DNA from: Ylistrum balloti
Lineage: Eukaryota
Direction: 5' to 3'
DNA: 64,000 bases
NCBI RefSeq assembly: GCF_031769215.1
Contig: NW_026782000.1
Span: forward strand, 186,001-250,000
This document shows, in pieces, positions 23,840-63,025 of this stretch. The notes beneath the pieces were generated by a model. It had not been told where the DNA came from. It did no database searches and was given only the letters and a program-made list of their open reading frames with translations. A program made the translations under genes and the position numbers. Positions within the stretch are counted from its first letter, which is position 1; each line of letters starts with the position of its first letter.

Positions 23840-24109
23840 TCAACCAGATTTGAAGAGCAGAATGGCGACCTGTCCAAGGTAGAAGTAAATGAAATGCTTG
23901 GTTTCGTGTGTTACATAGCTCCCGAAGTTGCGTCCAACAATGCAGTGCCAGGTTGGGTTGAACTTTTTGTCAAACTCTTTCTTGATATAAGCGGCGATGT
24001 CTTTTTCAATGTTGTACTTCTCTAGGGCCTGTGTAGCTATATCGACCGATTCCTGCTGCATGTCTTCTGGCATGTCAGCATTCTTGATAACAGCTTTTCT
24101 ATCAACCAT
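23840..24109 (-). CDS. DYNLL2: Dynein light chain LC8, copy A (divergent: V2, P14, E20, I24, F50)
   Basis: 89-aa ORF ending [36 protein letters not shown]. The true ATG is at 24109, after the acceptor TTTAG|GAATC; the extra N-terminus in the track is intron. Non-coding exon 1 donor at 25490-25491. Invertebrate LC8 is co-orthologous to DYNLL1/2; the symbol reflects the closest sequence. Confidence 0.93.
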
Positions 24110-25541
24110 GATTCCTAAACAAAAATGGAGACGAAACATGACATTAATAATATTTCATCCAATTTTCAATATATCCCAACTCAGCATAATTTGAATTATT
24201 GATACAAAAAAAACCTAAAGAATTTTGACGAGTTCTGTACGAGTGATTTTATTCTGGCTTCCACGAACTTTAAGAAGGAATTTGCCTCTTTCACTTAGTG
24301 AAATTATACATCATGATAAATTGACTTGATGAAAACTGGAAAGTGATTTTTTAACATTTTGATTTTGGTCCATTATTTTGTGTTAATTTTAATCTATCAC
24401 TGTGAATTCCGCGAAAACAAAGAAAGCTGAACCCCTTGTCCGTCACGGAAGAAATGACCAACTCAATGGAGTTTAATTTATTAAAGATGTACAGTGAATA
24501 TCAGATCAATTTTGTTCCTGGAAAATGTCAGCAGAAATGTCGTTTCATATGACATGGTGAGTCACTACAGATTCAATGATATATTCATTTGTAGAAATAC
24601 AAGTGAAACTCGGCCTTACCACAAATTCAGATATAAGCGAATGTAAAATCTATGTCTGTAACATAACATTATGTATTTCTAAATTGCTCGTCGTAAATAT
24701 TGCATAACTTATGGTCGTTCCCAACACCACAGTGCCAAACGCATACACACAAATAGTAGTAATTCTACAATTACGCAATGCACGTTGTCCTATACGAATT
24801 AAGATATCAGTGATATACAAGGAAATAGAAGGTTAAATTTAGATCGCACATCCTGTTGAATCATTACAACGGGCGCTAGGTCGTACAAAGCCTGGTAAGC
24901 TTTACGACTCGTTACTGCATATTCTGTTCCAACTTAGAATCTCAATCACTTTCAAACCAATTATTTTTCACTTATTTCTTCTAGTCTCTAATATACTGTT
25001 TTTATTTCTGGTCTTTCGTTTCTAGTTTTAGATATATTACGTTATTGTGATTTCCTGTAAAGCTTAAATGAGTTTGAAAACATGGGCCCACAGCAGACGT
25101 AAGGGCCCGACACGGAAGGCAAGCTATGATATTTTGTATATATGGGAAGAAGGTTATATATGTACAGTATAACAAAGTATCTAGAAAACAAACAAAAAAC
25201 CGAGGGTTTGTGCCCGAAAAAAACCCTGAAATTAGTGGCATTTATGGTACTACAGAGATATTCAATATATTTCTTCATGACACATGTGCACGATCATAAA
25301 TACTTAACGATGTACATGTAATCTCTATGCACTTTGTGTCCGAGACACAGCTTTACATATTTAACATTGATTGTAGCTGTTCTGCGTGTAGATACATCAA
25401 ATGATAATAATTTCGACGCTTTCAGAAAAGTTATAAAAGTTAAATGTATCAAATAAAGTTACTTAAAGTGAGAGAAAGAAACAATTTTTACCTTTTTTCG
25501 CTGATTTTCCACAATGCTGTATGATGAAAGGGCAAAAAGTG

Positions 25542-25681
25542 ATGGCAACATTTGCCACAAGCATCCATGGACGCACTTTCAATTTCATTCATTGGCTAGA
25601 CACATTTCTACCATTTGACGAAATGAACGAGATTCCTTAGAGTCATATATCGAACCACAATTCACTGGGTTTTAGCAGACG
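25542..25681 (-). promoter_or_regulatory. LC8-A promoter module
   Basis: Plus-strand order: ATGGCAAC 25542, ATGGACGC 25567, ATTGG 25591, GTCATATATCGAACCACAA 25642, TAGCAGACG 25673. Lies just upstream of the exon 1 donor. Confidence 0.7.
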
Positions 25682-59003: not shown

Positions 59004-62000
59004 TAAGGACCTAAATTTTGAAACCTCGGAGGCGAAATTTCAAAATTGATTGATTGTATAATGCATTATTTGACTGCCACTGTGTCTTATTCTAAATCTT
59101 ATCAAAATGTGGTGTTTAGTTGTGGGTCTTTTATACAATATGCATGCACGTATTTCTTAACAACCCATGTCAGGTTGATAGGGGGAAATGGCTTATTTAG
59201 TTTCTTCGGTTACTTGATTCAAATAGCGAGATACTTCTTGCTTGTAATAACACAGAGGACACGGATGGAAATATCTGTAGCAGCCCAAGCGACTGTTATC
59301 AACAATATAGGATCTTAAAAGAGTTTTCATTTCATATGAAATTTTTGAAAAACGTGTCTTAGTTTTTACTTTTGGGACTCTTCCAGTGCAAAACTTATAA
59401 AATGTCATATTAAAGTTAAAAGTTAAGATACCTTATATCAAATAACCCAGGAAAGTTGCATTTTGGCAGGTTTGAAAAACCGAGGTATGGAGGACAAAAT
59501 CAAACGATAGCAGCTACTTTCAGTTCATCATGTAACGCCTTTGTTTATATAATGTCATCACAGTCACCTTTTGACTGTCGCAGTCAAGGAAAACCTTCCC
59601 AGGGTTTATTACATTTGTATGGAAAACTATAGCGTTGGCGAATTCACTAGATAACAAGCGTATTTTGTGATAAGATTATTTACTAGTCTAAGGGATATAA
59701 CCTACATCCGAGTTTAACTGAGGTACATCGCTCTGTGTTAACGCTCCTGAGATTCTGTAAGCTGTACATACTGTAAACAGGGATTTGGATTTCCGTGAAC
59801 AGGTCTATCGAGTACAACATCCACAAACTGCACTTGAATGGCAGAAGAATGACATACATCCTCGATACACCATGGGTTACGCTCGCTACTGATCTCTACA
59901 TTCATGAAAAGTCAACATATATGGTTCCGTGTGCGACAACCTGTGGACAAGACGAGAAGACTAGTTCGCTCCTTTGATATACTTCAAAAGAATCTCGAGG
60001 TAGTATAACGGTATATTGTTAAGTTTGGTGATGCTTCAGTCTATACCCGAAACTTGTTCTATACCAATCAAATAAATTGGCTTGTGCCAGGAGTGTGGAG
60101 AGCCATAGTGATCGTAACCCCCGGAGAATCGAGGATGCGTTGTCTTTAAGATTTTATACGACTTACTGGTTGAAGCTTTTAACTAAAAAATCGTTGAGTT
60201 GGAGAAATAGGCATAACCGTTAATTTTAGACTTTAATAGCATCACATGATAATCACTGGTCAGTTTTCATGGAGTTTTTTTGGTGTGTGTCATTATTCAT
60301 GTCTGGAAACCAATTACCGTGTTATATTTAAAGAAATTTGATAGAAACTACTAATCGCTACCAAGATCCCATTACAAGACATGAGAGTATCTTCAAATTA
60401 AAAAGAAATCTACATGTAATTAATTATTCATTCTTTTAACTTAATACATCTGGAGAAAACGTTCGACAAAACCGAATGGTGTTTTATGTGGTCTTATGTT
60501 GTTGATCTTAACTCCATTTTACACCAAACAGTAGATATAAGAATTCTTCAACAATTATTACAGAACTAGTGATTTTGGGGAGACTATTACCAATTCCGAT
60601 TGTTGGAGAAATTTCCTGTTAATGGTGATAAATCGTCTGCAATTGGTGTGAGGTTCGGGCTAATTGTCTCAGTAAATTGATTCACGACTCTAAAAAGCGA
60701 TCATGAAATATGATAGATCCGTCAACAATGACTCCCAGTTCACCGTTTTTCTCCTAAAGATTTTTAATTACCTTTAAATGTACTCTCTCCCTCACGTTTG
60801 ACTTCTATGCATAGACCGAAAATTTCTGTCTCTAAAATGATAAATGAATGTCTACATTCCAATTTCAATAAAAATGTTAATACCAATAACAGCATAATAA
60901 ACGTGAATATTGACGTAAAATTATCATTTTAGAGATAATTTTTTGTTGTTTTTAATTCTAACTAAAACTAATAGCAATGACCTTAACAATTGTCATGGTA
61001 ACATAGGATGGGCGTACTTTCGATACCGTTTTAGTGATTACGGGACTACGATCTTTCATCCTGCAACTGGCGGTGTTATTCTCGGAATCCACCTGCTACA
61101 TATATTTTATTTGTATTCGACAGTGACGGAAAACAAATGCATTTTAGCACCTACGTTAATTACTTTATAAATTACTTAAAAATCGCGTTTAATACTATTA
61201 ATTGCTGTTGAAATAAGCGATTTTATATATTTCATTGAACAAGTTCAATGGAGAAAATTCATGAAATCGCTGTCATATCCATTTAAGTTTGTAAATATAT
61301 CTCTGCGTGGAACAATTATTAAGGCGAACATTATTGGGCAAAAGTCAGCGTAGCGTCAACGGCAAGTAAACATCAATTAAACAACAAAATTGAAATTTTT
61401 ATGGTCTAGATATGATTTTCAACAAATGTTGCAGGATAAATAGTATACCAGGTATATGGCCCAGTGTTAAAATATAGCTACATTTTGGCTCGGGAAAGAA
61501 AGACACCTGGCTCGCCACTCTTCACCCTTGCCAAAATACAGTTTATATTATAAGACACTGACCACGTATTTTCTATTTATAGGAGCAGTGATTCTATACA
61601 TTGCCAAAGCAGTTAAGCAAAAAAATTGCAGCTTTCTCAAAATTAAATCTTTTCAATCACCTGATTACCTAACACAGAGAGAAAAGAAAATGTGCCTAGT
61701 GGTGACTTCTCTTGTGCTTACTTTTGTTTGTTCACCAATACGCGAAGTAAACGGTCTCCTCTTCTTGTACCTGTCATTATCTAATCTGTTCTACTTGTGT
61801 TCCATTCTATGCTGTATCTAGTGTGTACTTACCCCCAAGCAGACTTATTTTGTTGTCAATGACAAACGAATTTTATTTGTTACAAAAATAACACTAACAA
61901 ATCAAAGTGACAAATCACAAAGTTTACATGAGTAGGTTGGAAAACTACTCAACTTTTTGAAGTCGTGTATATAAAACTAGACAATCCATTTGTAGTAACA

Positions 62001-62755
62001 ACAGTTTATTTAGACTTTGTAAAATACACTCAATATTAAAGCACCAAATTAAATAATAGTACAAACAATTACACAGATGACTTCACACAAAATGGAATTA
62101 TTGTTGAACAAAGAAAAAACCCTAAATGCAGAGTTGGCACAATTAATAAAAAATAAAGCACACAGGTGCATCACTTATTGGGACTGGGACAATATCTTGA
62201 CATTCAACTGGTCTTTGGTATTTACTAACATCTCGCATGAATGAAACTCACTAATCAACCTAACATTTCTTTCACAAATTTATACAAACCACAAAGGTTC
62301 ATTATACTTTGATATGCAACATACCTGAATCACAACAAACCTATCATCATCCCAACCACAAACAAAAACATACTTACATAAAAGTTTTGTCATGCACATT
62401 AACAAATGTATTCTTTGGTCAATTTGTTAACTGTTCTTAGTCTAATGCTGAATCTTTTGAACTCATGATGTCAACTTCAATGAAAAAAATGTCAAACTGT
62501 CAATGTAAGATCTGTGTTTCTTCACAATGATATCAAAATTAAAAACTTCTACTCTGTAATATCAACAGTAAAACACATTTGGCAAAAATGTGAATTTGCA
62601 TTCACGAAGAAACACTTTGATTTCAAAAACAAGTATTCTTAATTCAACCTTACACAGATTACAGATGGAGGATTTTTTTCAGAAATTTCAGCTGTGGAAT
62701 AAAAGATGTCAAGGAAAACACTTCTGCTTAATTTCAGTCAACATCATTCTGGTGT

Positions 62756-63025
62756 TTAGCCTGATTTGAAGAGCAGGATGGCAACCTGTCCAAGGTAGAA
62801 ATAAATGAAATGCTTGGTTTCATGAGTTACATAGCTCCCAAAGTTGCGTCCAACAATGCAGTGCCAGGTTGGGTTGTACTTTTTGTCAAACTCTTTCTTG
62901 ATGAAAGCAGCAATATCTTTCTCGATGTTGTACTTCTCCAGAGCCTGTGTGGCACAGTCAACAGCATCTTGCTGCATGTCTTCAGCCATGTCAGCATTTT
63001 TTATCACAGCCTTTCTATCAGACAT
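62756..63025 (-). CDS. DYNLL2: Dynein light chain LC8, copy F (A14, A21, F41)
   Basis: Intact 89-aa LC8. The true ATG is at 63025, after TTTTTCAG|TCACC; the track's 20-aa extension is intron. Candidate exon 1 donor AATAC|GTAAGG at 63864-63865. Confidence 0.95.

Follow-up and report, generated by a model that had tools for sequence, protein, structure and literature searches.

We describe an array of LC8 (DYNLL) genes in the genome of the scallop Ylistrum balloti. The stretch of DNA analysed, hereafter called the window, comprises 64,000 nucleotides (positions 186001-250000 of contig JAUZWB010000626.1, assembly GCA_031769215.1), and six LC8 coding sequences (g1 to g6) are spread over 39 kb of it. 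We consider it likely that the array is a real, in-place tandem expansion of a single ancestral LC8/DYNLL gene that lies between COQ5 and an SRSF1-type gene. Whole genes would have been copied, each with a promoter core, a non-coding first exon, an intron in the 5' untranslated region (5'UTR) and a single coding exon, and the copy that became g5 would have been inverted. Five loci (g1, g2/3, g4, g5 and g6) would be old or distinct, and the split between g2 and g3 would be very recent. Strong purifying selection would have kept the coding sequences (CDS) near-invariant and gene conversion would have homogenised them in part, with introns, UTRs and most promoter sequence diverging beyond alignment. 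Such an array would supply more, or differently regulated, near-identical versions of the LC8 dimerisation hub. It is best described as five secure loci plus one doubtful recent duplicate, and as a well-preserved, not categorically new, expansion of a known gene.

Six coding sequences and their predicted transcription units

The array is built from six complete 270-nt open reading frames (ORFs), each of 89 codons plus a stop:

23840..24109, minus strand: g1 LC8 CDS, the most diverged copy (V2, P14, E20, I24, F50)
35585..35854, minus strand: g2 LC8 CDS (S14, F41), within duplicated segment A
47670..47939, minus strand: g3 LC8 CDS (P14, Y41), within duplicated segment A'
52186..52455, minus strand: g4 LC8 CDS (A14), 267/270 identical to g3
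55974..56243, plus strand: g5 LC8 CDS (A2, S14), the sole inverted copy, head-to-head with g4
62756..63025, minus strand: g6 LC8 CDS, taken to be the ancestral copy

By each sequence criterion that we tested, the products belong to the LC8/DYNLL family. All six match the Pfam family Dynein_light (PF01221) from end to end, with E-values of 5e-44 to 3e-43, scores of 146.6-148.9 bits against a cut-off of 29.1, and coverage of profile positions 1-86 of 86. The g3 protein is identical to mammalian DYNLL2 (1pwj), whose structures have been solved, at 86 of 89 residues (E 3e-57, residues 1-89 aligned to 1-89). Pairwise protein identity among the scallop copies is 92-99%, and no two are the same. The variable residues are exactly 2, 14, 20, 21, 24, 41 and 50, and residues 51-89 are invariant across the six copies and identical to those of DYNLL2. 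Thus, the initial annotation, which had claimed six intact and different 89-residue LC8 genes at 23840-63025, none of them pseudogenised, with variation confined to these seven positions, was exact in its coordinates, reading frames and protein comparison.

A relaxed tblastn search uncovered no seventh LC8 copy and no clear pseudogene within the window, which is free of N. A weak fragment resembling the LC8 N-terminus (RNANMTEDMHQ..DC, E 0.1-0.3) lies at 48313-48375 and 36246-36290, inside intron 1 of g3 and g2, and could be what is left of a partial duplication or a chance match. The GC content at third codon positions is 0.47-0.62 for the copies, and the surrounding stretch is about 34% GC. 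All six proteins are already present in NCBI nr and UniRef, and the literature searched held no paper on LC8 arrays in molluscs. The genes are therefore already annotated, but the array as such has apparently escaped discussion.

Given that all six proteins differ, it is appropriate to ask whether the copies have specialised as isoforms whose function or choice of partner diverged through changes outside the peptide-binding groove, notably at residues 41 and 14 and through the loss of Cys24 in g1. The g1 protein carries four private changes. In the three youngest copies, codon 14 (35813-35815 in g2, 47898-47900 in g3 and 52414-52416 in g4) reads TCT, CCT and GCT, giving S, P and A by changes at the first codon position. 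Residues 2, 21 and 41 also separate vertebrate DYNLL1 from DYNLL2. However, the changes are few and conservative, and the states A/S14, A/S21 and F/Y41 recur among the orthologues of other molluscs, a pattern that resembles drift at a few permissive sites. Residues 51-89, which include the strand that binds partner peptides, do not vary at all, and dN/dS, the ratio of nonsynonymous to synonymous divergence, is far below 1 throughout. We therefore regard isoform specialisation as unlikely. Residue 14 is the only residue that distinguishes g3 from g4. The g2 protein is identical to that of a gastropod, clustering at 90% identity places all animal LC8 proteins in a few clusters, and no literature on LC8 residue 41 was found.

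In front of each of the six ATG codons lies a pyrimidine tract followed by an AG that ends 5 nt upstream, and A occupies position -3. The 5'UTR-intron acceptor that had been noticed just before each ATG is thus present in all copies, and donors and promoter cores can now be added to it. The introns and cores below are predicted from the sequence:

24115..25491, minus strand: g1 predicted 5'UTR intron, donor AAG/GTAAAA, acceptor TTTAG/GAATC-ATG
25567..25595, minus strand: g1 promoter core, CCAAT-N-GCGTCCAT
35860..36677, minus strand: g2 predicted 5'UTR intron, donor CAG/GTAAAT
36767..36795, minus strand: g2 promoter core, followed by GTTGCTA
47945..48757, minus strand: g3 predicted 5'UTR intron, donor CAG/GTAAAT
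48847..48875, minus strand: g3 promoter core
52461..53557, minus strand: g4 predicted 5'UTR intron, donor CAG/GTATGT
53666..53694, minus strand: g4 promoter core
55328..55356, plus strand: g5 promoter core
55459..55968, plus strand: g5 predicted 5'UTR intron, donor CAG/GTAAGT
63031..64000 and on to 64027, minus strand: g6 predicted 5'UTR intron, donor AAG/GTAGGT
64150-64175, minus strand, just beyond the window: g6 variant core, which lies with exon 1 in a block common with the SRSF1-type gene

For the pattern CCAAT-N14-18-GTCCAT the window yields five matches where 0.19 would be expected, and 100 shuffled sequences never gave as many as five. Every one of these matches has the orientation of an LC8 gene whose ATG follows 0.6-1.5 kb downstream. 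The core has the same spacing upstream of g2 and g3, and diverged versions stand upstream of g4, g1 and g5. When the six copies were aligned with two orthologues, CCAAT, G.GTC..T and GT.GC were invariant, and a consensus GT donor follows each core at a distance of about 100-150 nt. Each copy would then constitute a full predicted transcription unit, in which the core precedes a non-coding exon 1 of about 100 nt, a 0.5-1.4 kb intron and the single coding exon. All six copies have core, donor and acceptor in common, as is characteristic of segmental duplication at the DNA level, and about 350 nt of intron recur in g2, g3 and g4. Since the core has been kept while other non-coding DNA has become unalignable, it provides indirect evidence that all copies are transcribed.

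Because each coding sequence occupies a single exon, and because five of the six lie on the same strand and each starts with a splice acceptor, the copies might be viewed as processed retrogenes or as alternative last exons of a single unit under the g6 promoter. However, a promoter core, an exon 1 donor and an intron belong to each copy separately, and g5 is inverted. No poly(A) tail or target-site duplication flanks the copies, and no A-tract follows their 3' flanks. Furthermore, a single coding exon, with an acceptor AG ending 0 to 8 nt before the ATG, is likewise seen in LC8 genes from other scallops and two gastropods, and this structure is therefore ancestral in molluscs. We rejected both the retrogene and the single-transcription-unit proposals, which we judge to be very improbable, on the per-copy evidence of promoter, donor and acceptor.

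Pomacea, Mizuhopecten, Pecten maximus and the genome GCA_041381155.1 all encode the g6 protein unchanged. Upstream of g6, a block of 500-600 nt is 70-73% conserved with Mizuhopecten, Pecten maximus and GCA_041381155.1. The divergent neighbour has its first coding exon in this block, which also holds two CCAAT boxes and the near-invariant stretch ACAGCGTC ... GTTGCTAATGTCAGCATCATACGCAGAA, followed by the donor AAG/GTAGGT. This intergenic block, which runs from 63978-64000 of the window on to about 64576 and contains a 30-nt stretch that is almost invariant in four scallop genomes, has the features of a conserved bidirectional promoter serving g6 and the SRSF1-like gene. We consider g6 to be the ancestral copy because its protein is identical in other molluscs and it has kept this conserved common promoter.

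The core was retained through all the duplications, and scallops may control LC8 transcription chiefly through it. We also searched upstream of the gastropod copies and of the second copy in Pecten, and the core was not found at either. In human and fly, the LC8 gene is activated by the zinc-finger protein ASCIZ, which LC8 in turn damps by binding to it (PMC5963919). It is conceivable, if rather improbable, that the core with its GCGTCCAT and GTTGCTA elements, found in all copies and in the scallop g6 orthologues, is a candidate docking site for one LC8-sensing regulator of the ASCIZ/ATMIN type, such that the array would act as a single feedback-controlled dosage unit. An array controlled in this manner may have expanded to serve a heavy load of multivalent LC8 clients in the lineage. 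Both the site and its regulator are speculation on our part.

Selection, gene conversion and probable role

Purifying selection had been proposed in the initial annotation, with dN/dS as its check, and the proposal is well supported. By the method of Nei and Gojobori, dN/dS over all pairs of copies is 0.009-0.115, which is evidence of strong purifying selection. When g1, g5, g6 and the g2-g4 group are compared with one another, dN/dS is 0.009-0.055 at synonymous divergence (dS) of 0.7-2.0. The comparisons of g1 with the others give a dN/dS of 0.016-0.055 over the same dS range (0.7-2.0). By dS, g5 is the oldest copy (1.0-2.0), with a dN/dS of 0.009-0.016, and within the g2-g4 group dS is only 0.04-0.13 and dN/dS is 0.07-0.115. 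Low dN/dS at high dS implies that the old copies have been kept intact through a long divergence.

Selection appears to have acted together with exchange between copies. The g3 and g4 coding sequences are identical at 267 of 270 positions, the intron stretch that they have in common is about 80% identical, and their 3' flanks are unalignable, with similarity ending at the stop codon. On this pattern, gene conversion can be said to homogenise the g3 and g4 coding sequences. Between g1 and g2-g4 there are 19-20 nt differences in the first 90 nt and only 3-4 in the last 90 nt, and the 3' end of g1 has probably been homogenised by conversion as well. In comparisons of g5 with all others, the differences are even, at 10-16 nt per third. 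Because conversion is limited to the coding sequence, the dS values of g1 to g4 underestimate their ages. The array thus represents a compact case of purifying selection operating together with CDS-limited gene conversion.

Conversion also bears on whether g6 might be the only working gene, with most of the derived copies silent or decaying. Gene conversion could hold reading frames open without selection, and our search of sequencing runs did not find expression evidence for the copies. Against this stand g1 and g5, which have gone through dS of 0.7-2.0 at dN/dS of 0.01-0.055 without any disabling change, and the retention by all copies of core, donor, acceptor and the A at -3 where the adjoining non-coding sequence is unalignable. 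We consider widespread silence among the copies to be improbable.

The role of the array would most likely be one of dosage and regulatory subdivision rather than one of novel functions for the protein. Divergence of the UTRs, the introns and the surroundings of the promoters would favour regulatory subdivision, and the common core would favour a shared basal control.

The g2/g3 pair and the number of genes

Several points weigh against a real expansion of six selected, working genes. The young copies are only 3-8 nt apart, which is too few differences for a test of selection on each copy, and what keeps the g4 frame open could be conversion from g3 and not selection acting on g4. Sequence conservation is the only basis for the predicted exon 1 and promoters. 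A search of sequencing runs with the stretch 51800-56600 matched DNA runs and no RNA run, and look-ups of the exact proteins found g1 to g5 solely on the genome contig and on no transcript-derived contig. Copy numbers in other bivalves were sampled within at most 10 kb either side of known copies. The remaining points of this kind concern g2 and g3, which self-comparison places within a 97-98% identical tandem unit of 5.6 kb:

34009..36983: duplicated segment A, with g2 inside; it matches A' at 97-98.3% identity and is without a 256-nt piece of A'
36984..43485, minus strand: long interspersed nuclear element (LINE) with endonuclease and reverse transcriptase (RT), which separates A from B and has a target-site duplication of 10 bp, CTCGATATTT
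43486..45844: duplicated segment B, which matches B' at 96.6% identity
45838..49063: duplicated segment A', with g3 inside
49092..51443: duplicated segment B'

The empty site of the LINE is preserved between A' and B' (49064-49100), and the junction of B with A' at 45838-45841 shares CACA with both ends of the unit. ORF2 of the LINE is split into a 723-aa endonuclease and RT frame and a 284-aa frame.

We compared the region 43400-49399 with contigs from four independent DNA runs, which come from two studies, carry two organism labels and are about 99% like the window. The comparison covers 40 of the 125 differences between the units and a subset of the contig pieces. In these contigs, the sequence upstream of A runs into A-like sequence, A-like sequence runs into B-like sequence with no LINE in between, and B-like sequence continues into that downstream of B'. 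No listed contig in the four runs bridges the junction of B with A'. The joint of the LINE with B was not seen among the listed contigs either, and contigs that reach the LINE end continue, at 43485, into other sequence. Each of the four data sets has one A-type and one B-type contig at the positions listed. The contig of each run is a mosaic of A and A', or B and B', letters that is largely the same in all four runs, and the 256-nt piece is present. The mosaic contigs imply that the unit differences behave as segregating variants and not as fixed differences between paralogues. Because no listed contig bridges either junction and each run yields one A-type and one B-type contig, the six copies may really be five.

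We think it quite likely that the independently sampled animals lack the g2/g3 duplication, and g2/g3 would be a very recent 5.6-kb tandem duplication that is probably not fixed. The earlier count of six stands as a count of intact ORFs in the assembly, but g2 and g3 as two separate copies are unsupported by the four DNA runs. It is possible, if the less favoured outcome, that g2 and g3 represent a single locus in two haplotypes, one of them with a heterozygous LINE, that the assembler placed in tandem, or else that the duplication is private to the sequenced animal. The identities of 97-98.3% for A/A' and 96.6% for B/B' are within the range of allelic divergence in bivalves. Four contig sets from two studies contain no listed contig over B to A' (45838-45841) or over the LINE to B (43485/43486), and they present the flanks as joined by one LINE-free A-B unit with a single mosaic sequence per run. 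On the other side, the window is free of N, and the two units meet head-to-tail in a clean join at 4 bp of CACA microhomology, as is typical of real tandem duplications; read overlap would hardly produce such a join. Moreover, Logan contigs pop bubbles, lose short pieces at junctions and may merge repeats that are near-identical; absence from them is therefore not proof, and the comparison covered only part of the differences and pieces. Between the two variants of this proposal, the clean microhomology junction and gap-free contig favour a real private duplication, and the allelic-level divergence and heterozygous LINE favour haplotypes laid in tandem.

The expansion that we prefer, with five secure loci, draws on evidence outside the 5.6-kb unit. 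The 3' flank that belongs to g4 itself is present in an independent DNA run (loose end at 47670), and five DNA runs from two studies contain 74-78% of the words sampled from the g4-g5 stretch (51800-56600). No second contig of GCA_031769215.1 with these proteins was found. As a general matter, near-identical tandem copies in assemblies of heterozygous bivalves are not to be counted as fixed genes without read support.

Neighbourhood, other molluscs and known systems

The array is framed by single genes on both sides. To the left lies COQ5:

8008..9057, plus strand: COQ5 methyltransferase exons (Pfam Ubie_methyltran); the called gene ends near 21291 and forms the left boundary

COQ5 is arranged tail-to-tail with g1. 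On the right, an SRSF1-type gene starts at about 64401 on the plus strand, head-to-head with g6 and 1.4 kb from the g6 ATG. It encodes two RNA-recognition motifs (RRMs), a glycine-rich linker and an arginine-serine (RS) tail, and its second RRM matches SRSF1 structures (E 9e-21). We also checked whether the array extends to the right of the window. It does not: the SRSF1-type gene follows g6 and the 9 kb right of the window hold no further LC8 gene, so the array is bounded at that end.

Gene lists of human chromosome 12 and of pig give the order SRSF9, DYNLL1, COQ5. The same order in mammals indicates that the array occupies the ancestral DYNLL position within an old microsynteny block, and the SRSF-DYNLL-COQ5 neighbourhood appears to be common to mammals and molluscs.

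A 2.8-kb satellite at 31132-33892, between g1 and g2, has a 19/37-nt unit in about 149 or 75 copies with 84% matches, and it accounts for long spurious ORFs in the ORF list. Other tandem repeats lie in and around COQ5 and its left neighbour, at 3210-3968 (77/151 nt), 12663-13193 (28 nt, 19 copies) and 19544-19887 (117 nt, copies 99% identical).

In other molluscs, the places sampled held the following LC8 copies:

Pecten maximus: two LC8 genes in 29 kb next to an SRSF1-like gene, tail-to-tail like g6 and g5; none in the next 10 kb
Mizuhopecten: one LC8 gene and a partial copy without the first 18 codons
GCA_041381155.1: two g6-type copies 24 kb apart, dS 0.02, with the promoter core in both
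Pomacea: two copies 5 kb apart, dS 0.43

The multiple copies in these relatives indicate that tandem duplication of LC8 is recurrent in molluscs, and the largest array among the genomes sampled is that of the present window. The array had been called lineage-specific in the initial annotation. It is indeed larger than what is found in the sampled scallop stretches, but its restriction to the lineage can be called only likely, given sampling limited to 10-kb flanks.

A tree of the coding sequences of 15 mollusc LC8 genes gave no resolution within bivalves and no assignable orthology between g1-g5 and the other scallop copies, because synonymous sites are saturated over only 267 nt. Outside the coding sequence, nothing could be aligned to Pecten, Mizuhopecten or GCA_041381155 except the g6/SRSF promoter block. 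The second Pecten copy is positioned like g5, tail-to-tail with g6, and its coding sequence is nearer to g4 (88.6%) than to g5 (83.7%). It also has the unusual changes A11T, Q19H, Y41C and F86L.

Further details concern two of these genomes. The partial Mizuhopecten copy (18743-18955 of the stretch examined) carries V81N, is not called as a gene and is either a pseudogene or a two-exon variant. In GCA_041381155.1 (CM084272.1), the genome's own young g6-type duplication carried along the promoter core and part of the SRSF-side block.

Few hub proteins of eukaryotes are as conserved as LC8, and the animals studied keep its dose under tight control. With five to six near-identical, independently promoted copies, the array is a natural record of the hub residues that can vary, namely 2, 14, 20, 21, 24, 41 and 50. 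The conserved promoter core, the CDS-limited gene conversion and the SRSF-DYNLL-COQ5 microsynteny are side results that should also be of use.

The vertebrate genes DYNLL1 and DYNLL2 belong to the same family as the scallop copies (g3 is 86/89 identical to DYNLL2), and DYNLL1 has the same neighbours, since it likewise lies between COQ5 and an SRSF1/9-type gene. The vertebrate paralogues also differ at a handful of permissive residues. However, the vertebrate paralogues lie on different chromosomes and stem from genome duplications, whereas the scallop has five to six tandem copies in 39 kb, each with a single coding exon and with conversion between copies.

Flatworms provide a second comparison, in that the dynein light chain (DLC) families of trematodes and schistosomes also arose by lineage-specific multiplication of Dynein_light genes. 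Sequence divergence is much greater among the flatworm copies, which include several tegument antigens or EF-hand fusions; in contrast, the scallop copies remain 92-99% identical in protein and close to canonical LC8. In trematodes, DLC is among the most duplicated gene groups (PMC7936022).

Finally, the array can be set beside those of the histone, ubiquitin and tubulin type. It resembles them in that near-identical proteins are encoded by old members with high synonymous divergence, and in that its conversion tracts are limited to the coding sequence while the flanks have diverged. Arrays of this type are tandem families under concerted evolution and purifying selection. The scallop array differs from them in being small and in that each member has its own diverged UTRs and intron.

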